This document shows positions 822 through 33,725 of a stretch of 64,000 nt of DNA, one piece after another. The number at the start of each line of letters is the position of its first letter. The stretch's first letter is position 1. The translations under genes and the position numbers were made by a program. The DNA comes from Anthoceros angustus (taxonomy: Eukaryota > Plantae > Anthocerotophyta). The notes under the pieces are model-generated. The model was not told the DNA's origin, did not search any database, and saw nothing but the letters and a program-made list of their open reading frames with translations. The DNA is taken from the NCBI GenBank assembly GCA_010909165.1, contig MU008161.1, forward strand, positions 1,550,001-1,614,000, in the 5' to 3' direction.

Positions 822-1544
822 TACAGTCAAACCCCTCTAATTGGGACCCCTATAAATGGGAACCCCCTTTAAATGGGACGCTCGGGCTTACTCCCTTGAA
901 TGTGCTACATGCTAAATGGGAAACCCTCTAATTTGTAAATGGGAACATGTCTCCCAAACATTCAATGCAAGTACACCTCTGTAAAAGGGAAAATACATAT
1001 TTTAAAAAAAATAAAAAATTGAGGAAATCGTCTTATCGAGATTACGTATATTCCTACAGAGGACCAAATATGGCAGCATTAATCCCTCCGCCTGTCAATG
1101 AGGAGGGTGAGGAGAATGATACAGTGTCAGTGGAGACCATAGCGCCAAGACCGCGTACGACAAAGGATGCTGTAGATAATGCTATGAGGATAGCGAAGAT
1201 GTTTTGGGAACAGATGCCACATAACACTCTTGATGCTTTGAAGTTGCATTCTCGGTTGGATGAAAGTAACTCGGCATCAATCAAGATTGATGATTATTTT
1301 AACCCGCAAACTAGAATTAGGTTGGCAGCTATGTAGTATGAGGAAGCATTTTGGATTTTTTGGATTTTTTGGATTTTTTTTGATTTTTTGGAAGCTTTTA
1401 AGCTCTTTCAAATGTTTGATTTAAAGGATTTTTTGATTTTTAAATATTTTTATTTTCAAAAGATGAAAATGCCTAAGCAGGAACCCTCTAAATGGGACGA
1501 TTTTTTGCTACTCCCAATTGTTCCCAATTAGAGGTCTCGATCAG
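822..1544 (+). mobile_element. Non-autonomous pogo/Tc1-mariner-like DNA transposon remnant
   Basis: Left end TA+CAGTCAAACCCCTCTAATTGGGA (822-846). Inverted TCCCAATTAGAGG at 1522-1534, with the outer right TIR decayed. Subterminal AAATGGGA/CCCTCTAA motifs occur at both ends. Internal ORF 947-1336 ends ...SIKIDDYF, resembling the C-terminal tail of pogo-family transposases. Confidence 0.6.
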
Positions 1545-2090
1545 ACAACATTTATGTCGTTACTGCTTAGATACTATACCTTTATACTATTTAATCAAAT
1601 TCTAGATACCATATCTTTGACATAATGGATATATGGATTTTAACTCTCAATGGCACCTATTCGTGAAGACTCTTTATGCCTTACTTTGTTTTGGATTCTC
1701 TTGGTGAAAAATTACGTATCCTTGGGGTGCATAATGTTCCCCTTGTCCTATTGCATATGACATATGAACTTTGAATCATGAATCCTACATTGTTGTGGAC
1801 CACACCAAGGTTTCGAACCCAAATAGCAAAAAACGAGCACCGGCTCAACTCCAGCGACTTGAATTTAAGGTGCTTTTAAATCACCATGCAACCCCTCCCT
1901 TGTGTACCATGCTCTCGCTCCCCATGTGCCACCATACCGGTGGTCATACCGCCAACGGGCAGTCTGCATTCAGTCTTCATTCAAATTTTCTTTGAAGGGA
2001 AAATTATTTCGCCCACCACTCGATAAAAAAAGGTGACTTATGTGTTGTGCATATTCTCAAATCACCTTGTGCTCATAGAGACTAAAGTTA

Positions 2091-3203
2091 AAAACATCCC
2101 AACACCAAAGAAGACTTGTGTCTAAGAGTGCAAGAGTGCTGGCAACTTAAAGTTCATTATGTAGGTATACAAAATGTGTTTCAATTAAGAATAATGTGCG
2201 TTGCACATTGCCGATTACCTACCTAAGATAGTGTATCTTTTAGGCATAATAATGAGCTAGCGAGGAACCGGAGCCCTTATGTTCCAATAGAAGGAATCCA
2301 TAACTGCATCCCAAGCTACAAGGGGGCCTAAAAACTTCTATGTTGCCTATGGACCTTGGTGGCCCTCCACTCAATAGAAAAAAGGCCAGTTTTGTGCCAT
2401 GCCTATTCTCATACTATCACCTTGCGCTCATTGAGATTAAGTTCATTTCATCGCCATCATGGCACTTGCAAAGGGGACCACCTCACTCGTAACTCTACAA
2501 TCTAATTCAGACCCTACGCAGCCTTGGTGGCCTCAGATTCGGCTTGCTCCTTAATGCATACTAATCCCTTGGCACGCCCATACCTCACAGCCGCTCTCTT
2601 CTTCTCGGGCTAACAGTTTCTCTTTGTTTCTTGCTTGCGTCCTATTATCGATGGCGCACCTTGAATTCATCCTCTTTCGCCTCACAGCCCACGTCTAGAA
2701 GAAAGCTGCTTTCATTATTCGATGGGTAGGAGGATCCTGATATCATAACCTGAAATTATTATTTTGTAGATGGGTACTGGATGTTTGTATGCCCTCTCTC
2801 ATTGTTGATATGGTAGTCAATCACCCTAGGCCCGATTAACTTCTGTCATGAGTGCATACAGCAGCTGCAAAACTACCCTACTCTATTTTGTGGCCCTCAA
2901 ACAACAATTTCCTAACACCAAAGACGAAAAACATCTCAACAACAAAATTAAAAAACATCCCAACACCAAAGACGAAGTCTAACATCGCAACACCAAAGAA
3001 GACTTGTGTCTAGGAGTGCTGGCAACTTAAAACTCATTATGTAGGTATATAAAATGTGTTTCAATTAAGAATAATGTGATTTGCACATTGCCAATTACCT
3101 ACCTAAGATAGTGTATCTTTTAGGCATGATAATGAGCTGGCAAGGAGCTGGAGCCCTTATGTTCCAATAGAAGGAATCCTTAATTGCATCCCAAGCTATA
3201 AGG
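2091..3203. repeat. Dispersed ~240-bp direct duplication (2091-2323 vs 2951-3203) in AT-rich, probably TE-derived DNA
   Basis: Near-identical blocks AACATCCCAACACCAAAG...GTTCCAATAGAAGGAATCC...CCCAAGCTA. No intact ORF. Confidence 0.75.
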
Positions 3204-5894
3204 AGGAAGTCCTGAAAATCTCCATGTTGCCCATGGAGAGGTTGAAGAAGTGGGCTCAATATTGTGTCCTTATACCTCAAATGATGAGAAGAGAACGAAT
3301 CTGGATAATGGAAGTCTTGCCAGTTTCCCATTGAAATGTTGCGAAGGACGTAAGAGTCATAATTTGTACAAGAAGATGATCAAGATCTTATTCAATTTGC
3401 AAAAGACTTAGAGTAGAATCTGTCGGAAGTCCAAGATGCAAATGAGCCGGTTATAAGCGTCGAGCCATTTACAAGCGTATTTTTCCAACTACCCTCGGTG
3501 CCTAATTGTGAGGATGATCAGGACCTGATTCAATTTGCACAAGTGTTAGAGTAGGATCGTTCGAAAATCCAAGATCAACCTAAGGTTAAAAGTGTACCCT
3601 TCCAATCGTCGCCAGCGCCTAACTAAGCGCAACTCAAGATGTCCAAAAGCCTCAAAGAACAAGGCTAAGGATTGCCAAGAAAATGTTGCACATCTGAATG
3701 TTGCAATTAACAATGATCATGTCTAAACTAATTTGAACAAAAAATAGTGCAGAACATGCTGAAAGATGAAGATGGAGATAAGGTTATCTTGCTTGTGGCC
3801 GATGATGATGTTACTAAGAACAATATTGCTAAAATTAGAATCTACACAATTTCTAGAATGCAAGAGAGAGCAAAAAGGGGCAATGAATCAGCGAGTCCAT
3901 ACGGAGCTGCTGCAAATCCCAAAGCATAGAAAATTTGGACATGATGCAAGGAGAGAGCACCCGGTCGTCCAAGTTGACTAAACTTAATGATGAAAAAACA
4001 TATTTGAGTGTCAAAAGGTACTTAACCTAGGATAACCTCCATGTTTTAGGGTCTAAGGTTTAGGTTTGTTCAACTTTCTTTTTCTTTTTGTTCAACAAAT
4101 CAAAAAATCTAGTTCAATTCAGTGTTAAGATACGTCTCCAAGAGTCGTCTAAAAATCATGATAGGATAATCCGAATTATAAATCTTTGGATAGTTTTAGG
4201 TATTTCTACATTTTTACGATTGTTGCTTTGATAGCCATAACCAATTACTCTAGGCTAAGTCAAATTTTATCATCCTTAGCAAGTGTATGGTATTGCAAAA
4301 TTACATTGCTATGTTATGTAGTCCTTGAACAACTCCAAAGGGCAAAAATCATCTTATCATCAAAGAAGACAAGATTGTGTTCAGGAGAATTGGCATTATA
4401 AAAATTGATTATGTGGGTTTTCAGATTGTTTTGCAATTGAAAATAACGGGCGTTGCACGCTGTGGAATATCTAAGATGGTCTATCTTTGGGCACGAATGA
4501 TGGGCTGACAAAAAGCTAGAGCCCTCATGTATCAATGGAATGAAATTATCCTTCATTGCATCCTAAGGTACAAAGGGGAAGTATTGCCTGATGAAAACCT
4601 CTATTCCATGTTTAATTAACACTGATCAATGCTTAATTAACATAAGCACTTCAGATTATTAATACTAATTACTTACTTACATATAAGGAATTAGATAAAT
4701 TAACACAAATCAATCACTGAACCCAAGTGCTTAGATTAATATCACATGGTAAGACAAAATCCAATATAATATTTTGACTATTGAACTTTGCTTTCATTGC
4801 ATCATACGCAACATATTGTGCTATAAATCTTTCCACGTCTTCATACATATGAGACCAAAAGTAAGTGACTCTATCTTTTTGCCCTAGTGTTTTTCAAACT
4901 TTCACAACAATCATCTCCTTATCCGCTAATGTTGGCACTTCTCAAAGTTTCTCCCCTTCCTTGAGCAATATCTTGCCATCATGCCATGTATACCAAACCA
5001 TCTTGCGTTGGAGTTTTCCCATTGCTGACCCTTTGATACCCAACACCCAATGTTTCTTTTATATGCTGTGATGCTCCTGTGGTGTTGCTGAACACCAAGA
5101 TGTCATCAATATACCAACTCTAGGTCAACTATGTCATGAAAATAGATGGATGTATTTTTCAAGCCAAAGAGCATCATTTGCCACTCCCATAGTTGATCCT
5201 TCCCCCAAAATGTTGTCTTACTCTTGTCTTTCTCTTTTATGTCTTACAGTTGTCTCTCTCTTTTATGACAATTTGATTGAATCCTAACCAATCAAGCGTA
5301 GTGACATACTTGGCTTTCTCTACAGCGTTGAAGATCTCATCTGGTGCAAGCAGAGGTATCTCTTCATTGGGGTGACGTTCATCGAGTGGTCTATAGTCCC
5401 CACATATGCAACGATTTTTTCACTGGATACTTCATCTTTCTTCAATGGCAAAACAATAGCGGCTGCGTCTTTGATCAGCCCAACGGATGTGAGCTCCGGA
5501 CACCGTTTGTCTACTACGTCCCACTCCACCGAATGACGAGGATGTAATTTCTCTTCCTTGTAAGGAAGATGTGATATGTTTTGTAGTGTGGTTGGGATCG
5601 CAATAAGCTAAATCTCAGGATGGTGCAAGACCACCCTTGAAAGGACGAAATATAACACTCTTGTAAGGGGATAATTCTTTTTTTTAAATGCATGAAGACA
5701 TCTTTAATTAGAATAAATCTAGAGTCACAAAATAGGGGTCACACCCGACCCCGAAGAAGGCCAAGAGCCGAAAAAGCTCAAGTGACAAAACTGCGGAGGC
5801 GGAGGGATAGTAAGGATATGATACTCAGGCGGAGAATGTGCTAACAGTGCAGGCGGGTTGCGGTCAATTCCGACTTTGATCCACTCCGGGAGCG

Positions 5895-8581: not shown

Positions 8582-11500
8582 TTACAGCCGTGCTTCACTC
8601 CGGGGACGATTCTCATCCCCGACGAGAAAACTGTGCACCAGTCCGTCCATGTCTGTCCACCAGCTCTGGCCCGGCTGCTTCCATGCTCCGTCTCTTCGTC
8701 TCCTTGCCTGCATCTCCTTCGCCTGCTGCCACATCTCGGCACTGGTGTATATGTTCGACATCAACACATATGCTGCCGCATCTTTCTTGTCCAGCTTCAC
8801 CGCTTCCTCGAAAGCCTGGCGTCCCACCTCCACGTTGCTCCACTTTCTGCAAGCACTCAACAGAGTGTGCCAAACTGCGGCATCCGGCGCTACAGGCATT
8901 CTCCTTATTAACGCCAGTGCCTCGTCCAATTGTCCTGCTCGACCCAGGAGATCCACCATGCACGTACAGTGGTCCGCCGTGGGGATGATGCCGTAATCTC
9001 TGCTCATTGCCTCGAAGTACTCTCGGCCCTTGTTCACTAGACCTGTGTGACTGCATACTGTTAGTACGCTAAGGAACGTGATGCTGTCTGGCTGTATTCC
9101 ATCCTCTCTCATTTTCACAACTAAGTCAAAAACCTCGTCACCGGATCCTTGACGAGTGTATCCTGCAATCAGTGCACTCCAAGTGACAACATCTCTTTCG
9201 GGCAACGCATCAAACACCTGCTGTGCATCAACCATACTCCCCAACTTTGCATACATGTTTATCAAACTGTTGCCCACGGTGATATCAGTATGAAGGCCTT
9301 GATCTTCAACCTGTGAATGCAGCTCCCTTCCCACATGCAAAGCTGCCACACTTACACATGCCTGAAGGAGGCACACACATGTTACACAATCGAGTGCGAC
9401 AGCCCCTTCTTGTTGCATGGCCCTGTAAAGACTAAGAGCTTCCTGCCCCCTGCCCTGCTGGGAATATGCTGCTATCATGGCACTCCACGTTACCACATTT
9501 TTTTCACCCAGTTCGCCAAACAAGTCCTGAGCATCCTCCAAGCTGCCACACTTTGCATACATATTTACCAGGCTTCCACCCACAACCACATCTGCCTGCA
9601 ATCCTTGATGTCGAATCTGAGCATGTAACTGCTTTCCCATCTCCAAAGCGGGGGTGCCCAAATATGAACATGCCTGCAGTAGGCACACAAATGTCACGGA
9701 GTCCGGTGCAACTATTCCTTCCTCTTTCATAACATTGTAGAGATGAAGGGCTTCCTGGCCCATGCCCTGCTGGGAATAACCTGCTATCATGGCATTCCAC
9801 GTTACCACGTTCTTTTGACTCAGCCCTTCAAACATGCTCTGTGCATCCTCTAGGCTACCGCACTTTGCATACATGTTTACCAAGCTGTTGGCCACAAATA
9901 CATCATCCTCAAATCCTTGTTCTCTAAGTTCCGCATGAAGCTGCTTGCCCTTGTCTAAAGCTGGGGTACCGACACTTGCGCATGCCTGCAAGAGGGATAC
10001 AAATGTCACAGAATTGGGTGCATCCATACCCTCTTCCTGCATTGCATTGAGAAGATGAAGGGCTTCTTGCCCCATGCCCCTCTGGGAATATCCTGCTATC
10101 ATAGCATTCCATGTCACCACATCTTTGTGAGGAAGTCCGTCAAACACAGCTTGAGCATCCTTGATGCTCCCACACTTTGCATACATGTTCACCAAGCTGT
10201 TGCCTACAAACACATCAGCCTCAAGGCCCCGTTCTCCAATGTGTGCATGCAGCTTTCTTCCTTTCTCCAAAGCCTGGGTGTCCACACTTGCACATGCTTG
10301 GAGGAGCGGCACAAATGTCCCAGAATTCGGTGCAGCAATACCTTCTTCTTGCATATCCCTGTATAGATGAAGGGCTTCCTGCCCCATCCCTTGCTGGGAA
10401 TAGCCTGAAATCATGGCATTCCACGTCACAACATTCTTCCGAGGAAGTCTGTCAAACACTTCACGAGCATCCCCTATGCTGCCACACTTTGCATACATGT
10501 TAACCAGACTGCTGGCTACAAAAGCATCAACTTGAAGTCCTTGTTCTTTGATTTGTGCATGAAGCTGCTTTCCCTTCTCCAAGGCCGGACTGCCTAATCG
10601 AGCACATGCCTGCAGGAGGCCCACAAACGTCACAGAATCCGGTGCAACCACACCTTCTTCTTGCATAGCGTTGTAAAGACGAAGGGCTTCCTGCACCATG
10701 CTGTGCTGGGAATATCCTGCTATCATGGCACTCCACGTTACCACAGTTTTTTGCCGAAGTGTGTCAAACACACCCTGAGCATCTTCTAGGCTGCCGCACT
10801 TTGCATACATATTTACCAGGCTGTTGGCTATAAACACATCAGACTGAAGCCCTAGTTTTCTAATTTGTGCATGGAGCTGCCTCCCTTGTTCCAAAGCCGA
10901 GTTCCCCACATGTGCACATGCCTGCAGGACGGACACAAACGTCACAGAATCAGGTGCAACAATGCCTTCTTCTTGCATAGCCCTGAAGAGACGAAGGGCT
11001 TCCAGGCCCATGCCTTTTTGGGAATATCCAGCAATCATGGCACTCCAGGTCACCACATCCTTACTAGGAAGCCCGTCAAACACTCGCTGGGCATCTTGCA
11101 AGCTGCCACACTTCGCATACATGTCCACCAAGCAACTAGAAACAAACAGATTGAGCTCAACGTCACTAGCCAACAGGTCAGCATGCACTCGCTGCCCCGA
11201 CTTCAAATCTCCTCCCTTTGCACAAGCTTGCAGAGCTGCTACGAACACATGGCTATCTGGTTTCACGTCTGACCTTCGCATCCGATCATACAGTTGCAGG
11301 GCCTGGTTATCTTGTCCCTGCTTAACATGAGCAGAAATTATAGAAGACCACATGAACGCATCTGGTTTGTCAACTAAAGAGAACACATCCATCCCTTCCT
11401 GCAACCTGGCATGAGAGGCATACGTGCGGAGGATGTGGTTGCACAGGAACGTGTCCGACTCATAGCCCTTCTTCAAACTCAGAGCATGAACGCGGCGACT

Positions 11501-12022
11501 CAGGGGTAGATCCTTCCTCGCTTTACATTGTTTGAGGACCGTGTAAAAGAGAGCCTTGGAAACATGAACATCTATGTGCACCAGAACACCCAGAGCCTCT
11601 ACGGCCTCATGTACCTGCCCCTGCTGACATAGTTCTCGCACAGTTTCAGACGTCACCCCACTTTCATAGGCCGCAGGCTTGCCAGGGACGCCATCATCTG
11701 GCACACTGGAGCTGGACGCAGGAGAACGTGCACCATCAGCCAGCTTCGAATCCACCCCTGCCGGGACCTGCTGGGACTCCGGCGAGTCCGGCGACATGCG
11801 GCTCTCCTCATGGTGCCTGTCATCCTGGACCAATGCGGAGTGTTTCCACAAGAGCTGCTGATTGCTGGAACGCCCAATTCCAGCCAGACATCCTGTTGCA
11901 CGGGCTGGCTCTCTCGCCACGATGCTGCACTTTGCAGCTTCGTTGTTTGCCAACGGTTTGTTGCGTGAAGTCAACTGGGCGAGTGGTCTTCCCAGCATAC
12001 CCCTTACCCTCCACACAGCCAT
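8582..12022 (-). CDS. PLS-class PPR RNA-editing factor (26 PPR motifs, E1-E2-E+ with WW-type PG box), 1146 aa, intronless
   Basis: P/L/S triplets (VVTWxAMIAGYSQ; TFVxLLQAC; SLVNMYAKCGS). C-terminus WKQPGQSWWTDMDGLVHSFLVGDENRP. Arg-rich organelle-targeting-like N-terminus. Confidence 0.95.
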   Translation of the reverse strand: MAVWRVRGMLGRPLAQLTSRNKPLANNEAAKCSIVAREPARATGCLAGIGRSSNQQLLWKHSALVQDDRHHEESRMSPDSPESQQVPAGVDSKLADGARSPASSSSVPDDGVPGKPAAYESGVTSETVRELCQQGQVHEAVEALGVLVHIDVHVSKALFYTVLKQCKARKDLPLSRRVHALSLKKGYESDTFLCNHILRTYASHARLQEGMDVFSLVDKPDAFMWSSIISAHVKQGQDNQALQLYDRMRRSDVKPDSHVFVAALQACAKGGDLKSGQRVHADLLASDVELNLFVSSCLVDMYAKCGSLQDAQRVFDGLPSKDVVTWSAMIAGYSQKGMGLEALRLFRAMQEEGIVAPDSVTFVSVLQACAHVGNSALEQGRQLHAQIRKLGLQSDVFIANSLVNMYAKCGSLEDAQGVFDTLRQKTVVTWSAMIAGYSQHSMVQEALRLYNAMQEEGVVAPDSVTFVGLLQACARLGSPALEKGKQLHAQIKEQGLQVDAFVASSLVNMYAKCGSIGDAREVFDRLPRKNVVTWNAMISGYSQQGMGQEALHLYRDMQEEGIAAPNSGTFVPLLQACASVDTQALEKGRKLHAHIGERGLEADVFVGNSLVNMYAKCGSIKDAQAVFDGLPHKDVVTWNAMIAGYSQRGMGQEALHLLNAMQEEGMDAPNSVTFVSLLQACASVGTPALDKGKQLHAELREQGFEDDVFVANSLVNMYAKCGSLEDAQSMFEGLSQKNVVTWNAMIAGYSQQGMGQEALHLYNVMKEEGIVAPDSVTFVCLLQACSYLGTPALEMGKQLHAQIRHQGLQADVVVGGSLVNMYAKCGSLEDAQDLFGELGEKNVVTWSAMIAAYSQQGRGQEALSLYRAMQQEGAVALDCVTCVCLLQACVSVAALHVGRELHSQVEDQGLHTDITVGNSLINMYAKLGSMVDAQQVFDALPERDVVTWSALIAGYTRQGSGDEVFDLVVKMREDGIQPDSITFLSVLTVCSHTGLVNKGREYFEAMSRDYGIIPTADHCTCMVDLLGRAGQLDEALALIRRMPVAPDAAVWHTLLSACRKWSNVEVGRQAFEEAVKLDKKDAAAYVLMSNIYTSAEMWQQAKEMQARRRRDGAWKQPGQSWWTDMDGLVHSFLVGDENRPRSEARL

Positions 12023-14625: not shown

Positions 14626-17600
14626 ATGGCTGTGTGGAGGGTGACAGGTTTGCTGGGAAGGCCCCTCGCCCAGCTGACTTCACGGAAGCAGATGCTGGCA
14701 AACAACGAAGCTGCCAGGTGCAGCATATTGGCGGGAGAGCCAGCCCGTGCGACAGGGGGTCTGGCTGGAATCGGGTCTTCCAGCGACCAGCAGCTCTTGT
14801 GGGAGCAGTTTGCGTCGGACTCTGCATTGTTGGTTCAGGATGGCAGGCAATCGCGGGATTCCCGAAACAGGGAGTCTCAGCAGGTCCTCTGGTTGAACGA
14901 CCGGTACAAGCCGGCAGGGATGGATTCCAAGCTGGCTGCTGGTGCACCTGCTCTTGCGTCCAGCTGGAGCGTGCCGGATGATGGCGTCAGTGAAGTGACG
15001 GCTGGAATCGTGAGAGAACTATGTCAGCAGGGGCAGGTCAGTGAGGCCGTTGAGGCTCTGGGTGTTCTGGTGCATACAGGGTGTTATGTTTCCAAGGCTC
15101 TGTTTTGTACGGTCCTTAAAGAATGTATGGCGCGGAGGGATCTGCCTCTGAGTCGCCGTGTCCATGCTCTCAGTTTGAAGAAAGGGGTTGAGTCCGATAT
15201 GTTCTTGTGCAACCACATTCTGCGAATGTATTCTTCTCATGGCAGGTTGCAGGAAGCTGTGGATGTGTTCACTGAGCTTGCTGAACCAGATGCCTTCGCG
15301 TGGTCTACCATAATTTCTGCGCATGTTAAACAGGGACAAGATAGACAGGCCATACAACTGTATCATCGGATGCGAAGGTCAGACGTGAAGCCAGATGGCC
15401 ATGTGTTTGCCGCGGCTCTCCAGGCCTGTGCAAAGGGAGCGGACTTGAAATCTGGGCAGCTGGTGCATGCTGATGTGTTAGCTGCTGGGGTTGTTCCTGA
15501 TTTGTATGTTCGTAGCTCCTTGGTGGATATGTATGCCAAGTGTGGCAGCTTAGAAGCCGCTAAGAGAGAGTTCAATGAAATTGATAAAAAAAATGTGGTA
15601 ACGTGGAATGCTTTGATAGCTGGGTATGCCCAGCAGGGCCTGGGGCAGGAAGCCCTTGATCTCTACAAGCTTATGCAAAAAGAAGGTATAGTTGCACCTG
15701 ATTCTGTCACATTTTTGGGCCTCCTGCAAGCGTGTGCCCGTCTGGGGCCTCCAGCTTTGGAGAAGGGGAGGGAGCTTCATGTAGAAATTAGAAACCGCAG
15801 GCTTCAAGGTGAATTGTTTGTAGCCGGCAGTGTGGTGAACATGTACGCAAAGTGTGGCAGTCTAGAAGATGCTCGGGGCGTGTTTGATGGACTTGCACAC
15901 AAAGATGTTGTGACGTGGAGTGCCTTGATAACAGGATATTCCCAGCAGGGTAAGGGGCTAGAAGCTTTTCGTCTTCTCAAGGCCATGCAAGAAGAAGGGC
16001 TCACTGCATCCAGCACTGTGACATTTGTGTCCCTCCTGCAGGCATGTGCAAGTGCAGGCTCCCTGGCGTTGGAGAATGGGAAACGCCTTCATGCACAAAT
16101 CAGAGAGCGAGGGCTTCAGGCTCTTGTAGTTGTAGGTGGGAGCCTAGTGAACATGTATGCAAAGTGTGGCAGTCTAGAGGATGCTCGGGCTGTCTTTGAC
16201 GAACTTGGTCACAAAGATGTGGTGACTTGGAATGCCATGATAGCAGGATATTCCCAGCAGGGTCTGGGGCAGGAGGCCCTTCAACTTTACAGGGCTATGG
16301 AAGAAGGTATGACTTCACCTGGTGCTGCAACCTTTGTGTCCCTCCTGCAGGCATGTGCAAGCATGGGGACCCAGGGTTTGGAAGAGGGAAGCATCTTCAT
16401 GCACGTATCAGAGAACAAGGGCTTCAGGGTGATGTAATTGTAAGTGGGAGCCTGTTGACCATGTATGCCAAGTGCGGCAGTCTGGAGGATGCCGAGGCGT
16501 GTTTGACGGATTTCGTCAAAAAAATGTGGTGATGTGGAATGCCATGATCGCAGGATATTCCCAGCAGAGCATGGGGCATGAAGCCCTTGGTCTTTACGAT
16601 GCTATGCAAGAAGAGGGTATGGCTGCACCTAACTCTGTAACATTTTCATCCCTCCTGCAGGCATGCGCAAGTGTGGGCACCCTGGCTTTGGAGAAGGGTA
16701 AGCAGCTTCATGCGCAAATCAGAGAACAAGGACTGCAAGCTGATGTGTTTGTAGGTAGTAGTTTGGTCTACATGTATGCAAAGTGTGGCAGTCTGACGGA
16801 TGCTCGGGCCGTGTTTGACGGGCTTGGTCAAAAAACTGTGGTGACCTGGAGCTCCATGATAGCAGGATATGCCCAGCAGGGCATGGGTCAGGAAGCTCTT
16901 GGTCTTTATGCTGCAATGCAAGAAGAAGGCATGGCTGCCAATTCTGTGACATTTGTGTGCCTGCTGCAGGCATGTGCCAGTGTGGCAGCTTAGAAGCCGC
17001 TAAGAGAGAGTTCAATGAAATTGATAAAAAATGTGGTAACGTGGAATGCTTTGATAGCTGGGTATGCCCAGCAGGGCCTGGGGCAGGAAGCCCTTGATCT
17101 CTACAAGCTTATGCAAAAGAAGGTATAGTTGCACCTGATTCTGTCACATTTTGGGCCTCCTGCAAGCGTGTGCCCGTCTGGGGCCTCCAGCTTTGGAGAA
17201 GGGAGGGAGCTTCATGTAGAAATTAGAAACCGCAGGCTTCAAGGTGAATTGTTTGTAGCCGGCAGTGTGGTGAACATGTACGCAAAGTGTGGCAGTCTAG
17301 AAGATGCTCAGGGCGTGTTTGATGGACTTGCACACAAAGATGTTGTGACGTGGAGTGCCTTGATAACAGGATATTCCCAGCAGGGTAAGGGGCTAGAAGC
17401 TTTTCGTCTTCTCAAGGCCATGCAAGAAGAAGGGCTCACTGCATCCAGCACTGTGACATTTGTGTCCCTCCTGCAGGCATGTGCAAGTGCAGGCTCCTGG
17501 CGTTGGAGAATGGGAAACGCCTTCATGCACAAATCAGAGAGCGAGGGCTTCAGGCTCTTGTAGTTGTAGGTGGGAGCCTAGTGAACATGTATGCAAAGTG

Positions 17601-19506
17601 TGGCAGTCTAGAGGATGCTCGGGCTGTCTTTGACGAACTTGGTCACAAAGATGTGGTGACTTGGAATGCCATGATAGCAGGATATTCCCAGCAGGGTCTG
17701 GGGCAGGAGGCCCTTCAACTTTACAGGGCTATGGAAGAAGGTATGACTTCACCCGGTGCTGCAACCTTTGTGTCCCTCCTGCAGGCATGTGCAAGCATGG
17801 GGACCCAGGGTTTGGAAGAGGGGAAGCATCTTCATGCACGTATCAGAGAACAAGGGCTTCAGGGTGATGTAATTGTAAGTGGGAGCCTGTTGACCATGTA
17901 TGCCAAGTGCGGCAGTCTGGAGGATGCCCGAGGCGTGTTTGACGGATTTCGTCAAAAAAATGTGGTGATGTGGAATGCCATGATCGCAGGATATTCCCAG
18001 CAGAGCATGGGGCATGAAGCCCTTGGTCTTTACGATGCTATGCAAGAAGAGGGTATGGCTGCACCTAACTCTGTAACATTTTCATCCCTCCTGCAGGCAT
18101 GCGCAAGTGTGGGCACCCTGGCTTTGGAGAAGGGTAAGCAGCTTCATGCGCAAATCAGAGAACAAGGACTGCAAGCTGATGTGTTTGTAGGTAGTAGTTT
18201 GGTCTACATGTATGCAAAGTGTGGCAGTCTGACGGATGCTCGGGCCGTGTTTGACGGGCTTGGTCAAAAAACTGTGGTGACCTGGAGCTCCATGATAGCA
18301 GGATATGCCCAGCAGGGCATGGGTCAGGAAGCTCTTGGTCTTTATGCTGCAATGCAAGAAGAAGGCATGGCTGCCAATTCTGTGACATTTGTGTGCCTGC
18401 TGCAGGCATGTGCCAGTGTGGGCAGCTCGGCTTTGGAGAAGGGCAAGCAGATTCATGCGCAGATTCGAGAACGAGGTTTTGAGTCTGATCTTGTTATAGG
18501 GGGGAGCCTCGTAAACATGTATGCAAAGTGTGGCAGTGTAGAGGATGCTCGAGGTGTATTTGACACTCTCCCTAAAAAAAATGTGGTGACATGGACTGCC
18601 ATGATAGCAGGATATTCTCAGACGGGCATGGGGCGGGAAGCCATTAGTCTGTACAGGGCCATGCAAGAGGAGGGCGTGGCTGCACCCGATTGTGTGACAT
18701 TTGTATGTCTCCTCCAGGCATGTGCAACTGTGGCCGCTTTGCATCTGGGCGTGCAGCTTCATGCACAGATAAAGGAACAAGGGCTTCAATCTGATGTGCT
18801 TATAGCGGGCAGCTTGATACACATGTATGGGAAGTGCGGTAGCATGGTAGCCGCACAGCAGGTGTTTGAGGAAATGCCCGAAAAGGGTGTCGTCATCTGG
18901 AATGCACTGATCGCTGGATACGCTCGCCAAGGAGACAGTCAAGCAGTCTTTGCCTTGATTTCTAGAATGAATAAAGAAGGCATACAGCCAGACGGCGTCA
19001 CATTCCTCAGTGTATTAACAGCATGCAGTCATACAGGGGAAGTGAATAAGGGGCGAGATTACTTTGACACTATGAGCAGACACTATGGCATCATGCCTAC
19101 GGCTGACCATTACACATGCATGGTGGATCTCATGAGTCGTGCAGGAAAACTGGATGAGGCACTAGTCTGGATAGGGGCAATGCCCGTCGTGCCTAATGCT
19201 TCAGTTTGGCACACGCTATTGAACGCATGTCGAAAGTGGAGCAATGTAGAGGTGGGACGCCATGCTTTCCAAGAAGCAATGAAGCTAGACAGCAAAGACG
19301 CCTCAGCATATGTGTTGATGTCCAACATATACACCAATGCCGATAAGTGGGAGCAGGCACAGGATCTGCAAGCGAGGAGGAGAGGAATTGGTGCCTGGAA
19401 ACAGCCGGGCCAGAGCTGGTGGACGGACGTGGAGGGGCTGGTCCACAGCTTTTGTGTCGGGGACAAGAATCATCCGGAGGCTGAAACGGGCCTTCTCCAA
19501 TCATGA
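14626..19506 (+). CDS. PLS-class PPR editing factor (E+, WW-type), paralog of 8582-12022; as assembled it is broken by a 1.44-kb internal tandem duplication with frameshifts
   Basis: ORF pieces 14626-16437, 16472-16993, 17129-17563 and 17479-19506. N-terminus MAVWRVTGLLGRPLAQLTSR; C-terminus PGQSWWTDVEGLVHSFCVGDKNHPE. Collapsing the duplication gives 3447 nt (1148 aa, 26 motifs). Confidence 0.85.
15541..18416 (+). repeat. Tandem duplication of a ~1442-bp PPR segment (15541-16980 and 16981-18416)
   Basis: TGTGGCAGCTTAGAAGCCGCTAAGAGAGAG begins both copies. The differences I found are homopolymer deletions and 2 substitutions. Confidence 0.95.
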
Positions 19507-20247: not shown

Positions 20248-22035
20248 TCAGCTCCTTTCCGGTAAAACAGTGGAGGCCGCTTTAACCAGCATTTCAAGAG
20301 CGGGTGGGACAGCCTGCGCGCATTGCTGCAACAAATCCACTAGCTGTTCTGCAAGAGGGGCCATACCACCAGAGCAGATGCTGTACACCCTCCCATGGAT
20401 GGTCTCACTGGACATGCCTGTGAGCACAATACAGTATGCCGAGAAGCTGGAAGGGAAATCGTAGAAGATGACGTTGGAAACATTGATTGATTTCAGGGGG
20501 AAGCGGCCCAGCATGCTCTCTACCAACACGAGAGTATCCACCTCGCCTTCCTGGAACTTCTTCACCACTGGAAGATCTGCCAGCTCCTGTTGTTCTTTAC
20601 AGGCTGTTAAATCCTCTACGCTCAACCCTGCCTGAAGCATAGAAGCAAAGAGGTTTGGCACGTTCTCTCTGCGCTTAAGAACCACCAACATCCTAGGACC
20701 GGACCTAGACTGCACTTGCCGAGTTCTCACTTCCTCGAGAATCTTGTCAAACTTGACAAGTTTCTTGTTGTCATGGATCACCACGGAGACAGCTTGTGTA
20801 ATGCAAGCACTTCGCAAGGCCGTTGAGCTGTAGGATGTGACTCTGACAACAGGGTCCTTCATGAATAGCCGAGCAGTTCTGACGACGTTGCCAGGAAAGG
20901 CCTTACTGAGAACAACCATCTGCCTGCTGGAGTGCACAGTGGCTTCGATTCTAATGAGCTCTGACTCGAAGCCTTGAGCCAGCATGTCATCTAAACCATC
21001 CAAGACCAGAAACGATACCCCCGTCAGCTTGAGGGCATCCAGAGCCACGAGCTCGCAGAGTCTTTCTGGTGTTGCTACAATCATTTCCGGTGTCTGTGCT
21101 TGTAGACCTTCCAATTGTCGATCAATACCCGTGCCTGTGTGCACTCCTACACACGATATCTGCAGCAACTTCTTCAACACCTTCGCAGCAAGCCTCACCT
21201 GCTGCACCTGATCCTGCGAGGCAACCAGAATTACTGCAACGGGCTTCTTGTCAGAGGCTGCCACACCACGACCCACAATATGAGCAGCGGCGGCAGGAAT
21301 GTAACACAGCATCCTCTTCTCCGGAGCCAGCTCAAACGCTCCCAAGACATCAAGACCTCTTCCGCACGCGCTCCAGCACTGCTTCTCTAACTTCCCACCC
21401 ATGCCCCCCGAATTTGCTGACAAAATGCCATGCAGAGATATCTGAAATGCCAGCCCTGCAGCCTTGTCCTCCTTCAAGTTCCTAATGTTAGCATCAGCCG
21501 GGGGCTTGGATGTGTTGGCTCGCCACACAAATCTGGAAGGCACATGTCCATTGCCTGAAGGCAGAACACTTTTCTTCACTGCACCCTCAACCAAATCAAG
21601 ACCTGTTCGCTGTGGCTTCCCTATCCCCCCTCCTCCAGCCTGCGTCTCTACAAAACTGTGAAGCCCCTCAATCAGCTGTTCCACTTTCCGCCGCTTCCTG
21701 GACGTGGCATCCTCGTCAACTTTCTCCTGCCCCTTGCCCTGCACCCCTTCATCTCTTTTCCTCTTGATTGCCCTGATCCCTTCAGAAGGCGGAGCATCCT
21801 CGCCATTGCCCCTCTTCTTCTTTTGCTTACTGGACCCTGTGTCGTTGAAGGGATCCTGGGGAGTAGGCAGGGTGTAGCACATCCCCTCACATTTTCGCCG
21901 CGTCCCGAGCTTCCGCCTCCGCCGATGCTCTTGTGTTCCTTGCACAGCTTCAGCAGTGTCTGCCCCAGCCCTCCTTGCCCTCTTCCGGACCGCCTTGTTT
22001 CGCTTCTTCAACAGAGCATCGTCCCCCTTCGCCAT
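20248..22035 (-). CDS. DEAD-box-like protein with degenerate catalytic motifs and basic N-terminus (At2g28600-like), 595 aa
   Basis: MAKGDDALLKKRNKAVRKR...RRKCEGMCYTLPTPQDPFND; IVATPERL; LVLDGLDDML in place of DEAD; no GKT, SAT or HRIGR motifs. Confidence 0.85.
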   Translation of the reverse strand: MAKGDDALLKKRNKAVRKRARRAGADTAEAVQGTQEHRRRRKLGTRRKCEGMCYTLPTPQDPFNDTGSSKQKKKRGNGEDAPPSEGIRAIKRKRDEGVQGKGQEKVDEDATSRKRRKVEQLIEGLHSFVETQAGGGGIGKPQRTGLDLVEGAVKKSVLPSGNGHVPSRFVWRANTSKPPADANIRNLKEDKAAGLAFQISLHGILSANSGGMGGKLEKQCWSACGRGLDVLGAFELAPEKRMLCYIPAAAAHIVGRGVAASDKKPVAVILVASQDQVQQVRLAAKVLKKLLQISCVGVHTGTGIDRQLEGLQAQTPEMIVATPERLCELVALDALKLTGVSFLVLDGLDDMLAQGFESELIRIEATVHSSRQMVVLSKAFPGNVVRTARLFMKDPVVRVTSYSSTALRSACITQAVSVVIHDNKKLVKFDKILEEVRTRQVQSRSGPRMLVVLKRRENVPNLFASMLQAGLSVEDLTACKEQQELADLPVVKKFQEGEVDTLVLVESMLGRFPLKSINVSNVIFYDFPSSFSAYCIVLTGMSSETIHGRVYSICSGGMAPLAEQLVDLLQQCAQAVPPALEMLVKAASTVLPERS

Positions 22036-22074: not shown

Positions 22075-22422
22075 TACATCCCGATTTCAACGTCAGACAC
22101 AGCTGACACACAGTGTTTCATGATCCCATAGCCACAGCCAAATGGGATGGAGAGCTACTGGAGGAGCCAAAACCTAAACCTATTCTGCGAGAGCTGATCT
22201 CACATGCAAGCAGCCGGGCGAGCAGGACAACGCCAAGTGAGACAAAGAGACGATTCCCTGAAATTGTGGCGCACAGAGCTCGTGAGTCAGATGCAGCAGA
22301 AGGGGCGCGCTTGCAATAAGCGCTCCAGGAGCTTCTCCCGCACCCGGCTAGCTATTGAAGGAGCCTGACCTCAATGCGACAGCTTCAAGCCTGCTGATCA
22401 TCCCTGCTTGCCTGCTTGCTTG

Positions 22423-22520
22423 CCAGCCTCGAGCCTCGCAGCGCAAAGCAGTCCAGCCTCGAGCCTCGCAGCGCAAAGCAGTCCAGCCTCGAGCCTCGCA
22501 GCTCAAACCAGTCCAGCCTC
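22423..22520. repeat. 30-bp tandem repeat x3.3 (CCAGCCTCGAGCCTCGCAGCGCAAAGCAGT) immediately 5' of the PEAMT ATG
   Basis: Units start at 22423, 22453 and 22483, with a partial unit at 22513. Confidence 0.9.
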
Positions 22521-22527
22521 CTGCACC

Positions 22528-24006
22528 ATGGCTCTCACTTGTGAGCGCAGCTTGCAGAAAGATTACTGGAAGGAGCACACGCTTGTATTGAGCGTGGAGG
22601 CTATGATGTTGGACAGCCAAGCGGCGCAGCTGGACAAGGAGGAGAGGCCGGAAATTCTGGGCCTGCTGCCTCCTTTCAGTGGCAAGTCTGTGATCGAGCT
22701 GGGAGCTGGCATTGGGAGATTCACCGGGGAGCTTGCCAAGACTGCTGGCCGTGTTGTGGCTATGGATTTCATGGAGGACGCCATCAAGAAGAACGAGGAA
22801 GTGAACGGACATCACAAGAACGTGGAGTTCAAGTGCAAGGATGTGACCTCCTCGGATCTGGGAATTCCAGACGCGTCGGCGGATCTGGTCTTCTCCAACT
22901 GGCTGCTCATGTACCTGGCGGATGAGGAGGTGGAGGAGCTGGCCTCCAAGATGATTGCATGGCTGAAGGTGGGAGGATTTTTGTTTTTCCGGGAATCCTG
23001 CTACCACCAGTCAGGGGACCACAAGAGGAAGAGCAACCCGACGCATTACCGAGATCCCAGCTTCTACAACAAAATCTTCGAGGAGTGCCATATCCAGGAG
23101 GAAGACGGCAGCTACTCGGAGCTGCAACTGGTGCAGTGCAAATGCGTCGGGGCTTATGTGCGCAACAAGCGAAACCAGAATCAGATTTGTTGGCTCTGGA
23201 CGAAGGTGCCCTCATCTGCTCCGGAGGATAAGAGCGTGCAGCGGTTCCTGGACACTGTGCAGTACACGCAGACAGGCATTCTGCGGTACGAGCGCATCTT
23301 TGGGAATGGCTTTGTGAGCACGGGAGGTTTGGAAACCACCAAAGAGTTCGTGTCCAAGTTGCATCTGCGAAAAGGGCAGAAAGTTCTGGATGTCGGATGC
23401 GGAATCGGTGGAGGTGACTTCTACATGGCTAACACCTGTGAGGTTGAGGTGGTTGGCATCGACCTCTCCGTGAACATGATCTCCATCGCGCTGGGAAGAG
23501 CCATCGGTCTCCAGTGCAGCGTCGAGTTCGAAATCTGCGATTGCACGAAGAAGGTGTACCCTGACAGCTCATTCGATGTGATATACAGCCGGGACACTCT
23601 CCTGCACATCCACGACAAGCCCGCACTGTTCCGGAACTTCTACAAGTGGTTGAAGCCCGGAGGCAAGGTGCTCATCAGCGACTATTGCCGAGCTCCAGAG
23701 ACTCCATCCGAGGGCTTCAGCCAGTACATCAAGCAGCGCGGCTATGACCTACACGGCGTGCAGCAGTATGGCCAGATGCTGCAAGACGCAGGCTTCGAGA
23801 TCGTCGTTGCCGAGGACCGCACTGAGCAGTTCGTGGAGGTGCTCACCAAGGAGCTGGAGGCGACGCTTAGGACCAAGGACGCCTTCGTGCGGGACTTCTC
23901 GGAGGAGGACTACGACGCCATCGTGAGTGGATGGCAGTCCAAGCTACAGAGGTGTGCGAAGGGTGAGCAAAAATGGGGCCTCTTCCTTGCAAACAAAAGC
24001 AAGTGA
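22528..24006 (+). CDS. PEAMT: Phosphoethanolamine N-methyltransferase (two SAM-methyltransferase domains), 492 aa, intronless
   Basis: [36 protein letters not shown]; [11 protein letters not shown]; [11 protein letters not shown]; GFVSTGG; [11 protein letters not shown]; [12 protein letters not shown]; GEQKWGLF. Confidence 0.95.
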
Positions 24007-30817: not shown

Positions 30818-32981
30818 TTATCTGAGTCTCATTGGCTGTGTCACATTTCCCGAATCCGAGCTGGAAGTTCCCCTGGTCGTTGAACCAGAATCTCCCAACA
30901 GGATGCCGTAACCTTGCATCTCGATCATCCTGTCTTCACAGTCGATGACATCAGCCTTGCTGTAAAACTCCTCAGCCTTCAGCAGCTTGGATCCCTTGAT
31001 CGCTTGCAGCATTTCCACGACTTCACTCATGGACGGTCTTGAGGTTCTTGACGACCCCACGCATGCCGCCGCAACCTGCCACCACAAACTGTTAGTCTCC
31101 TTTCTGCTGTCAGCTGATCTGAAGGGCTCCTTACAGCTGTAAGCTGACTCACCTGTGCAACTGCCCCAACTGCATGGAGCTCCTCTGCTGAAAGCGTGGA
31201 CAACATATGCGAGTCAACAATTTCGTGGACCCTCCCACTCTTGATCAAGGGGATTGAGGACAAAGCAAGGTTCGGCTCCTCTTCAGGTTTGGAATAGTCC
31301 ATCGGCTTCTTGGACGTGATCAGCTCCAGTAGTACAACCCCAAAGCTGTACACATCTGTTTTATCGGTGAGCTTGCAGTTGCGGTAATATTCCGGATCCA
31401 GATAGCCAGGAGTTCCCTTCACGAGTGTGAACACGTGTGTATCTTCCAAAGCCACCAGCTTGGAAAGCCCAAAGTCCGCAACTTTGCCGTTCAAGGCGTG
31501 GTCTAGTAGGATATTGGCAGACTTGACATCACGATGGATTATTGGTGGTGTTGCCTGAACATGCAAGTACTTGAGTGCCTCAGCTGTTTGAAGAGCAATC
31601 CTGAACCTTGTCTTCCAATCAAGCCCGGTGCCGAGGCCATCCTGCAAAGTGCCATTGGGTACGAACTCAAACACCAGCAACGGAATTTCCCCCTCGATGC
31701 AGCAGCCTAGAAGCTTGACGAGATTCCTGTGGTTCACTTGCGAGAGGATGTCCACCTCGTTTACGAACGACTCCACATCTTCGGCATGCTTTCCCATTTT
31801 AATGGCCACGGTTCTGCCATCATCCAAAGTCCCTTTATACACTGTGCCAAACCCTCCTCTCCCAACCTCGTTATCTGCGGAGAAGCTGCTTGTTGCTCGA
31901 TCCAGCTCAGCATAGGTGAAGAAGGTGCCTGTAGTGAGTCGAGCGGCACTCCCCTTCAACATGCCATTGATGGCAGGCGATCGGGCTTGACCAGAATTGC
32001 CGAATCTACGACTAGTCACAACATGTCGTTCAGAATACCTGCCTCTGGGTTTAGATCCATACTGCCGCCGATAGTACCGAAACCCTACAAAGGCTAGAAC
32101 AACAATTGAGATGACGACGGTAGACACCGCTACCGCTGCACCCACCAGAACAGATTGCTAACGTTCAGTTGCCAGAGCTTTCTTCAGTACTCAACACCAG
32201 AAGAAACCTGGACAGCAAGCAACATGGGTCTACCTGCCACTGGGAACGTCTTCCCCTTCTTCCCCTGATCGGTACTGGTATTCGAGCTGCCTTCCCCTGC
32301 CAAGGCCCATTCGCGTTCAGACAGGTTCCTTCTACATACCAAGCAACAGTGGAGGACAAGGAGAGGGAGCAGGACCAGGAGCGGGAGCTTTCTGAACCGG
32401 AGGCGGTGAAGGCGAAGGCGAAGGCGAAGGCGCAGGCGAAGGCGCAGGCGAAGACAGGACCCTGACGAAAAACTGCATTCCATCCAGGCAGTCTGCACTA
32501 GTGTCGGTACTGGTTTGCCCGGAGCTGATGAGGTATACCGTGCCAGCGAAGGGAAGAATGAGCGTGAAATCGCCTGACCCGTTGAAAGGATTACCCCTGT
32601 TCGCGATCGAGCAGCTCGTCAGGTCACTGGCTGACCAGAGCTGTGTCACGTCATGGATTTTGTTGTCGAACAGGAACCCTAAGGCCATGGCAACATTAAC
32701 AGGCAGCCACCGAGATAGGATGAAACGCCATGAACAAGCATGGCAGCCAGCCGCTGCAAACAGCACACCATCTTACACAAGGAATCGTTGACGTAGAGCG
32801 TCACATTCTCTGCCCACTTCTGGTAGAAGCTCGCGTCGGCCTCAGGAAACCAGTTGGGGTTGGATTCTAAGCCTCCGACACGGTACTTGACAGCCTGGGC
32901 GTGATCCACAGGAGCGGCAGCCAACATGAGAGCGAGCAGCGCGAGTGCCATCCCCATCCTGGCCATCCTTGACGACGCCAT
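30818..32981 (-). CDS. Receptor-like kinase with phytocyanin (plastocyanin-like/ENODL) ectodomain, Pro-rich stalk, TM helix and WAK/LRK10L-like kinase; 5 exons, ~615 aa
   Basis: complement(join(30818..31075,31153..32135,32234..32296,32340..32678,32777..32981)); all introns are GT-AG and frame-consistent. Signal peptide; YRVGG..W..Y.KWA..V.DSLWF; C..GM motif; SPAPSP repeats; TM AVAVSTVVISIVVLAFVGF; kinase GRGGFG, VAIK, HRDVKSAN, DFG, GTPGYLDPEY. Confidence 0.85.
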
Positions 32982-33628
32982 CTCTGGCTATGCCGAGCCT
33001 CCTCCAACTGCAACTTGGTAACCACGTGCACTCTCGAGGCTGCTGGCTACCGCATAATCTTCTAGCGCTGTCGTTTGGCAGCACAGCTTCCTTTCACTTT
33101 CCTTAGCTGCTGCGACCGCGACCGCGGCCGTGCAATCTTAGCTCCATGTGCAGGCTGCAATCCGTTGTATAAAGGGACAAGTGACAGTAAAATATGCTTG
33201 CCCTCCTTGAAACTTCGATGGCTGGCGAGAAGGCGAGAACTGGGGCTGGCTTGAACGCTTCAACTTTGAACTTGGAGATGCTGCGCACTTCCAGGGCCCG
33301 AAGGCTCCAAGAAATATCAGATAGTAGGAGCGTGAGACGTACAATAGACTCGACTTGACTTGACTCGACTCGACTTGATTCGACTTGACAGAGCTGGAAG
33401 TGCCTGGGTATCGATTCGATGGGAATTATGGGATCCGGGTAGCCCGCGGGGAACAAACGTAAGTCTCAGCCTCGGATGGTCTGCGAAAGTTCACAATGTA
33501 CTCTAGCATAGGAATGCGTTAACGGTTGAACACTAGTAGGGGAATGCGTTTACGGTTAAATAGTGGCGTGCACATAGGAGGCAACCAGGACTGAACTGAT
33601 GACCTATCGGACTGCAGCCCATTGCCCT

Positions 33629-33709
<81 letters not shown>

Positions 33710-33725
33710 CCAACAACAACAACAA
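33629..33725. repeat. (AAC)n microsatellite, about 31-32 units with one interruption
   Basis: Directly visible. Confidence 0.98.

Follow-up and report, generated by a model that had tools for sequence, protein, structure and literature searches.

Within a 64,000-nucleotide stretch of the Anthoceros angustus genome (contig MU008161.1, positions 1,550,001 to 1,614,000; hereafter the window, counted from its first letter), the minus strand at positions 32981-30818 carries a single gene of five coding exons. This plant gene is genuine, and it is both transcribed and spliced. Its product is likely to be a type-I receptor-like kinase (RLK) of 603 residues, in which a copper-less phytocyanin-type ectodomain, presumably acting as a binding module, is followed by a stalk, a linker encoded by a mini-exon, a transmembrane helix and a catalytically complete RD-type (arginine-aspartate) serine/threonine kinase of the WAK/WAKL branch. 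The gene belongs to a rare, already catalogued architecture and does not represent a new one.

Gene structure and transcript support

The reading frame starts with an ATG at 32981 and ends with a TAA at 30820-30818, both coordinates being exact. The exons E1 to E5 measure 205, 303, 63, 983 and 258 nt, corresponding to a coding sequence of 1812 nt or 603 codons plus the stop codon, and no in-frame stop was detected in any of them. All four introns of the coding region are bounded by GT..AG (Table 1). Their phases are 1, 1, 1 and 0, and the codons TGG, GGG and GCG are split by introns.

Splicing could be read directly from the contigs of one public sequencing run of the same organism (X1, presumably an RNA library), of which 14 of the 22 aligned pieces were at least 99% identical. 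The contigs are joined at 32677/32776 (intron 1), 32135/32234 (intron 3), 31073/31151 (intron 4) and 30607/30744 (an intron in the 3' untranslated region, UTR); after shifts, all joints correspond to CT..AC on the plus strand and thus to GT..AG on the strand of the gene. Furthermore, one contig has a loose end at 32297 whose 28 letters are identical to positions 32377-32404 and to no others, so that intron 2 is placed at 32375-32297 and exon 3, of 63 nt, at 32296-32234. A single X1 contig consequently links the end of the stalk in E2 (28 nt), the mini-exon E3 and the transmembrane and kinase exon E4. The sequence-only reading that preceded this analysis had assembled one protein across four frame-consistent GT-AG introns, and the exon arithmetic, the open frames, the X1 joints and the loose end bear this out.

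A gene model with the exon 2 donor at 32340/32339 and without the mini-exon was also considered. It was ruled out by the X1 joints and the loose end, which place the donor at 32376/32375 and include the 63-nt exon 3.

Unspliced X1 pieces were detected over intron 2 (record 3, 32268-32393) and intron 1 (record 5, 32649-32805) at depths of 15-17, compared with 27-46 for spliced pieces. If intron 2 were retained, the frame would stop at 32334-32332 and the product would be a kinase-less protein of phytocyanin domain and stalk; pre-mRNA or DNA carry-over would look alike.

Contigs of two further runs from two other organisms (X2 and X3) align to the kinase exons (30986-31880) with 90-95% identity and show odd, non-canonical “joints” across the ectodomain region. 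They are read as related genes aligned onto this gene and not as splice forms.

Domain organisation and kinase

According to a simple hydropathy reading, E1 begins with a hydrophobic, signal-peptide-like stretch of approximately residues 1-30, which ends in AQA and has a core with a mean Kyte-Doolittle value of 2.1. By the same reading, E4 starts with a predicted transmembrane helix of 18 hydrophobic residues (mean Kyte-Doolittle value of 2.7) followed by RYYRRQ, the basic residues lying on the cytosolic side. The stalk between them contains a hexamer tandem repeat at 32408-32453 with 7.7 copies, and about 390 cytosolic residues including the kinase follow the helix. Taken together with the Pfam matches, the layout of a type-I RLK is present, with signal peptide, extracellular region, one transmembrane helix and cytosolic kinase.

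E4 matched the Pfam families Pkinase (PF00069, E 4.1e-44) and PK_Tyr_Ser-Thr (PF07714, E 5.1e-44). It encodes the kinase motifs GRGGFG (GxGxxG), VAIK, HRD and DFG, while the RPSM motif is found in E5. The E4 kinase shares 48% identity over 326 residues with a protein of Calypogeia fissa (P0013), and E5 is collinear with the C-terminus of that protein (residues 486-503). In a word search with the raw open reading frame (ORF) of E4 the nearest named kinases were WAK, WAKL and LRK10L plant proteins with 50-58% identity, including WAK3, WAKL14 and WAKL20 of Selaginella.

A quick maximum-likelihood tree was calculated from 76 kinase domains that were the hits of one search; it is unrooted and has no outgroup. 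The gene pairs with L001, a genomic contig from the Logan collection (75% kinase identity), and two Calypogeia fissa proteins form their sister group (SH-aLRT, the approximate likelihood-ratio test, 93). All of these fall inside a starred clade shared with WAK/WAKL proteins of Selaginella. Judged from its motifs and relatives, the kinase is an intact RD type with a complete set of catalytic motifs and belongs to the WAK/WAKL branch within the RLK/Pelle family. No Pfam match to GUB_WAK_bind (PF13947) or to the EGF families was obtained on any exon.

The translation, hydropathy, Pfam and profile results agree with the domain order previously proposed, namely signal peptide, phytocyanin-like domain, stalk resembling arabinogalactan proteins (AGP) or extensins, transmembrane helix and intact RD kinase. 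The assignment of the kinase to the WAK/LRK10L type was likewise reproduced by the best named hits and the tree clade. The translation of E4 and its Pfam matches also uphold the observation that a transmembrane helix and a kinase stand where phytocyanins usually carry a glycosylphosphatidylinositol (GPI) signal.

Probable phytocyanin identity of the ectodomain

The ectodomain of approximately 110 residues is divided between two exons, and the tests were run on E1 and E2 separately. The only Pfam family reported on E2 was PF02298 (Cu_bind_like) with 12.5 bits and an E-value of 0.15, covering positions 26-77 of the 84 profile positions. This E-value is corrected for 24,736 families and corresponds to about 6e-6 for PF02298 alone, a family that had been named beforehand. 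The weak match was obtained with a trimmed E2 piece and with the raw ORF only, whereas a long E2 piece did not give it.

Three small hidden Markov models (HMMs) were built, against which E1 and E2 were scored apart. E1 aligned to positions 17-39 or 21-43 and E2 to the abutting positions 41-90 or 45-118, so that both exons are collinear on the profiles. The summed score of E1 and E2 exceeded all of 1000 shuffles for each of the three profiles.

In a profile comparison with hhalign, E2 together with its relative P0123 matched a profile of two Nelumbo blue-copper domains and two moss RLK ectodomains with a probability of 91.7% (P 7.7e-7, 74 columns). The E1 profile matched an N-terminal phytocyanin profile with P 4e-4. 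E1 also aligns with the N-terminal part of phytocyanins, and a BLASTP search related it to residues 38-100 of a protein of the moss Ceratodon purpureus (P0105; E 3e-4).

A phmmer search of E2 against 1.84 billion representatives revealed one true relative, P0123 (39% identity, E 6.9e-6). The second match, a bacterial PPC-repeat protein (P0124), was judged spurious, as were matches of the ectodomain among PDB sequences to an LRR Rab-family protein and to Pizza designs.

Features from a protein language model, which are a lead only, placed the ectodomain closest to three named clusters that all belong to PF02298 (0.85-0.86), followed by other cupredoxins. A Foldseek search with an AlphaFold model of E2 returned mavicyanin, stellacyanin, umecyanin, cucumber basic protein and plantacyanin at ranks 1-5 and 8 with E-values of 0.23-1.5; the model is of low confidence, and the alignment used for folding contained phytocyanins, which may bias it. 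Taking these results together, the ectodomain very probably has the phytocyanin (cupredoxin) fold.

Copper-site residues

The residues of the putative copper site were identified by aligning the domain to a canonical blue copper protein of Nelumbo and to moss RLK ectodomains. The conserved Cys pair of phytocyanins is kept at both invariant columns (the Cys of LTSCS and the Cys of ADC). At the ligand columns the first His (KIHDV) and the Met (DGMQF) are present, while the ligand Cys is replaced by Ser (YLIS versus FYIC) and the second His by Asp (ADC versus QHC). Thus, two of the four type-1 ligands are lost, and the alignments agree with the earlier reading of a domain that has its disulfide pair, N-terminal His and Met but neither the ligand Cys nor the second His.

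In cupredoxins a type-1 copper site is not known to form without the thiolate Cys. Since this residue is absent, the domain is best read as a copper-less binding module similar to those of the ENODLs, as far as its residues indicate.

Relatives with the same build

The same combination of domains was detected in other seed-free plants. The Ceratodon purpureus protein M758_5G193500 (P0105) is annotated with PF02298 and a kinase, the PF02298 domain scoring 28.8 bits, and the Calypogeia fissa protein P0013 combines PF02298 (16 bits) with a kinase. Like the Anthoceros gene, both encode a phytocyanin-like domain, a linker, a transmembrane helix and a WAK/WAKL-type RD kinase. Their kinases are 54-57% identical to that of this gene and their ectodomains are also copper-less, the Ceratodon ectodomain being ligand-deficient in the same way; the ectodomains themselves are weakly alike, with 29-40% identity over parts.

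The closest relative is L001 (SRR33208241, positions 970-3409), from which P0123 was derived. It contains, in this order, an E1-like exon, an E2-like exon, a second domain piece with a PF02298 score above the Pfam threshold (24.6 bits) and a kinase of the same type, and hence two phytocyanin-like domains in tandem ahead of the kinase. Neither domain has the copper Cys or the second His (domain one reads ITSS..SNC, domain two FID..TSC). Identity with the Anthoceros gene amounts to 39-53% in the ectodomain and 75% in the kinase.

The moss pair did not group with this gene in the quick kinase tree, so the architecture may have arisen more than once or may have been lost. When the Ceratodon ectodomain was used in a word search, the only matches were the protein itself, a single Logan relative and a blue copper protein of Nelumbo, which is uninformative on the phyletic spread.

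The best-scoring database match, P0001 of Calypogeia fissa (639 aa), contains two tandem kinase domains and no ectodomain. It probably represents two adjacent genes of this family that were merged by annotation.

The sequence-only reading had regarded the architecture as unusual. As a claim of novelty this is not supported, as the architecture already occurs in Ceratodon M758_5G193500, Calypogeia P0013 and L001 and is listed in the surveys RLPredictiOme and metaRLK.

Proposed function and alternative explanations

While gene structure, splicing, domain order and the residues present are shown by the data, the following model extends to fold, glycosylation, localisation, ligand binding and mode of activation and is predicted from the parts described above. 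The signal peptide would be cleaved and a single cupredoxin domain with a disulfide exposed outside the cell. The Ser/Pro/Ala stalk, which is probably hydroxylated and O-glycosylated, would hold the copper-less domain above the membrane. This domain may bind a cell-wall or secreted partner and would have no role as an electron carrier. Once the domain is occupied or clustered, the kinase would become active through trans-phosphorylation, in the same manner as other RD receptor kinases.

That a phytocyanin-like domain is naturally fused to a kinase speaks for its ability to form the extracellular part of a signalling receptor, where the partner is bound, and kinase activation may offer a simple read-out for finding the partner of the ectodomain. 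A wider interpretation would be that phytocyanin/ENODL-type domains are true receptor sensing modules, which were wired to WAK-type kinases in an old lineage of seed-free plants, and that the GPI-anchored ENODLs acting beside receptor kinases in flowering plants are the split version of the same unit. We consider this rather unlikely. If it were true, the gene family could be used directly to find the binding partners of ENODL domains.

According to a review, ENODL11-15 are needed in pollen tube reception and at least EN15 is an interacting protein (PMC5159419). The earlier suggestion of a Rosetta-stone link between the fusion and the ENODL-FERONIA interaction goes no further than analogy and speculation. 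Since the kinase in this fusion belongs to the WAK/WAKL type and no malectin-like domain is present, nothing specific on FERONIA binding follows from the fusion.

Among the alternatives, the outer part could serve mainly as a wall tether. In that case, as has been proposed for PERKs and WAKs, the kinase would be fixed to the wall or to the AGP matrix by the ENODL-like domain and the glycosylated Pro-rich stalk, and the protein would give a mechanical report on wall integrity. The SPAPSP stalk, the WAK/WAKL-type lineage of the kinase and the common occurrence of chimeric AGPs with a kinase among plants (PMC5266747) are consistent with such a role. However, the globular domain and its disulfide are conserved in L001 at the ectodomain identity given above, which suggests a constraint on a folded binding surface, so that a tether as the main function appears doubtful.

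Secondly, the ectodomain could be an unrelated small beta-sandwich that matches phytocyanin motifs by chance or convergence. Several results weigh against the phytocyanin assignment and thus speak for this possibility. The PF02298 score of E2 is below the gathering cut-off of 20.8 bits and E1 alone gave no Pfam match. The hhalign comparison with the Nelumbo pair alone reached only 8.6% (P 0.004), and the 91.7% obtained with the larger profile therefore leans on the moss RLK ectodomains. No solved phytocyanin was matched among the PDB sequences with phmmer and a two-sequence profile. The AlphaFold model of E2 alone has a predicted local distance difference test score (pLDDT) of 68, Foldseek yielded no match at E <= 0.001 with this model, and VIA-align found generic beta-sandwiches (Z <= 4.2) without singling out phytocyanins. 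Taking into account, however, that E1 and E2 are collinear and abutting on the phytocyanin profiles with scores above all shuffles, that PF02298 is the sole family reported on E2, that the nearest language-model clusters are PF02298 and then other cupredoxins, that solved phytocyanins occupy the top ranks of Foldseek, that homologous kinases carry Pfam-significant PF02298 domains and that the Cys pair, the His and the Met stand at the expected columns, an unrelated domain seems improbable.

The locus might, thirdly, comprise two separate genes, a secreted phytocyanin-AGP and a downstream kinase, or a non-functional chimera, the fusion being a read-through or an assembly artefact. The unspliced pieces over introns 1 and 2, the latter with a stop of the retained frame just past the stalk, fit this scenario. 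Moreover, no X1 contig spans the entire coding sequence, with holes at the SP repeat (32394-32458), at 31910-32003 and at 31628-31721. On the other hand, a spliced contig joins E2, E3 and E4 through canonical sites at a depth of 46 versus 15 for the unspliced form, neither E3 nor E4 provides a separate start codon and signal ahead of the transmembrane helix, all frames are open and the parts occur in the same order in moss, liverwort and L001. This explanation is therefore very unlikely.

Finally, the domain might still bind metal through the retained His and Met together with new ligands, and the receptor would then sense copper or the redox state; the metaRLK preprint proposes metal as the signal of Cu_bind_like RLKs (10.1101/2023.12.21.572927). 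This is hardly to be expected, since L001 and Ceratodon also lack the missing ligands. In addition, the exchange of the thiolate Cys, which is generally indispensable to a type-1 site, for Ser and of the second His for Asp argues against it. We thus favour the copper-less binding module at the head of a WAK/WAKL-type receptor kinase.

Gene features and neighbourhood in the window

The features of the gene are compiled in Table 1. A tblastn search revealed no paralogue of the gene in the window.

Table 1. Features of the phytocyanin-like receptor kinase gene, in the direction of transcription.
Feature	Positions	Strand	Basis
5' UTR, at least this long	32982..33291	-	X1 contig record 7, unbroken over 32916-33291
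Exon 1 (E1): start codon, predicted signal peptide, first phytocyanin-like strands (VGG..W..YxxWA..VNDSL)	32777..32981	-	translation, alignment
Intron 1, 98 nt, GT..AG, phase 1	32679..32776	-	X1 contig joint
Exon 2 (E2; 32376-32678), part one: remainder of phytocyanin-like domain	32461..32678	-	PF02298 match, hhalign, alignments, shuffles
Exon 2, part two: Ser/Pro/Ala-rich stalk, SPAPSP-type glycomodules	32376..32460	-	translation, tandem repeat
Intron 2, 79 nt, GT..AG, phase 1	32297..32375	-	X1 loose end at 32297
Exon 3 (E3): 63-nt mini-exon, extracellular juxtamembrane linker with NTS sequon	32234..32296	-	X1 joint 32135/32234 and loose end 32297
Intron 3, 98 nt, GT..AG, phase 1	32136..32233	-	X1 contig joint, depth 46, side 64
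Predicted transmembrane helix, 5' end of exon 4 (E4; 31153-32135)	32080..32135	-	translation, hydropathy
Remaining exon 4: cytosolic juxtamembrane region and kinase subdomains I-X	31153..32079	-	Pfam match approximately 31878-31255
Intron 4, 77 nt, GT..AG, phase 0	31076..31152	-	X1 contig joint, depth 83
Exon 5 (E5), coding part: kinase subdomain XI (RPSM..VVEML), C-terminal tail, TAA	30818..31075	-	translation, homologue match
3' UTR intron, 136 nt, GT..AG, 73 nt past the stop codon	30609..30744	-	X1 contig record 1 joint

The X1 contig that contains the 3' UTR intron (record 1) extends beyond 30500, and the 3' UTR is therefore long. A junction that far past the stop codon may render the mRNA a target of nonsense-mediated decay.

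Just upstream of the 5' UTR an (ACA)32 microsatellite and a GACTC-based repeat were detected at 33629-33725 and 33347-33389, respectively. The window furthermore contains three long intronless ORFs predicted to encode pentatricopeptide repeat proteins of the PLS type at 8582-12022 (minus strand), 14626-16437 (plus strand) and 17479-19506 (plus strand), two of which contain the E motif known from organelle RNA-editing factors; genes of this kind are in keeping with a seed-free land plant. An ORF of 532 aa at 22408-24006 (plus strand) contains two tandem S-adenosylmethionine-dependent methyltransferase domains in the manner of phosphoethanolamine N-methyltransferases, and the adjoining ORF at 20248-22035 (minus strand) encodes a DEAD-box helicase domain.

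Comparison with known systems

The domain combination has been recorded in two bulk surveys of predicted proteomes based on Pfam/SMART annotation. RLPredictiOme lists 12 “Plastocyanin-like-RLK” proteins among 40,418 RLKs from 80 Phytozome species (PMC9603095), and the metaRLK preprint counts Cu_bind_like among the Pfam RLK ectodomains “not previously reported” and suggests metal sensing (10.1101/2023.12.21.572927). These are table entries without gene structures, residue analysis or experiments, and they are likened to the present gene by domain combination alone. A literature search revealed no paper describing or testing a phytocyanin-RLK. With the architecture annotated in a moss and listed in two bulk surveys, the value of a single locus is limited; what it adds is a gene model backed by transcripts and an account, residue by residue, of the degenerate copper site.

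Similar to this protein, PERKs have a Pro-rich, probably O-glycosylated extracellular stretch directly ahead of the transmembrane helix and kinase. However, PERKs lack a globular ectodomain, and the kinase described here did not group with the PERK-named hits in the tree.

The kinases of the WAK, WAKL and LRK10L proteins, which are of the RD type, are closest to that of this gene and are found in the same clade of the tree. The ectodomains of WAK and WAKL proteins contain GUB_WAK_bind and/or EGF-like domains, whereas the ectodomain of this gene has neither.

The copper-binding phytocyanins (stellacyanin, uclacyanin and plantacyanin) employ His, Cys, His and Met or Gln as ligands, of which this domain keeps one His and the Met. 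In this respect it resembles the ENODLs, the copper-less phytocyanins of PF02298, which like this protein have a signal peptide, one phytocyanin-type domain with a Cys pair and incomplete copper ligands, and a Ser/Pro/Ala-rich AGP-like region. It differs from them in a longer loop from the position of the lost Cys to the second Cys and in single exons that stay below the PF02298 threshold of Pfam. Furthermore, ENODLs end in a GPI-anchor signal, whereas this protein continues with a transmembrane helix and a kinase.

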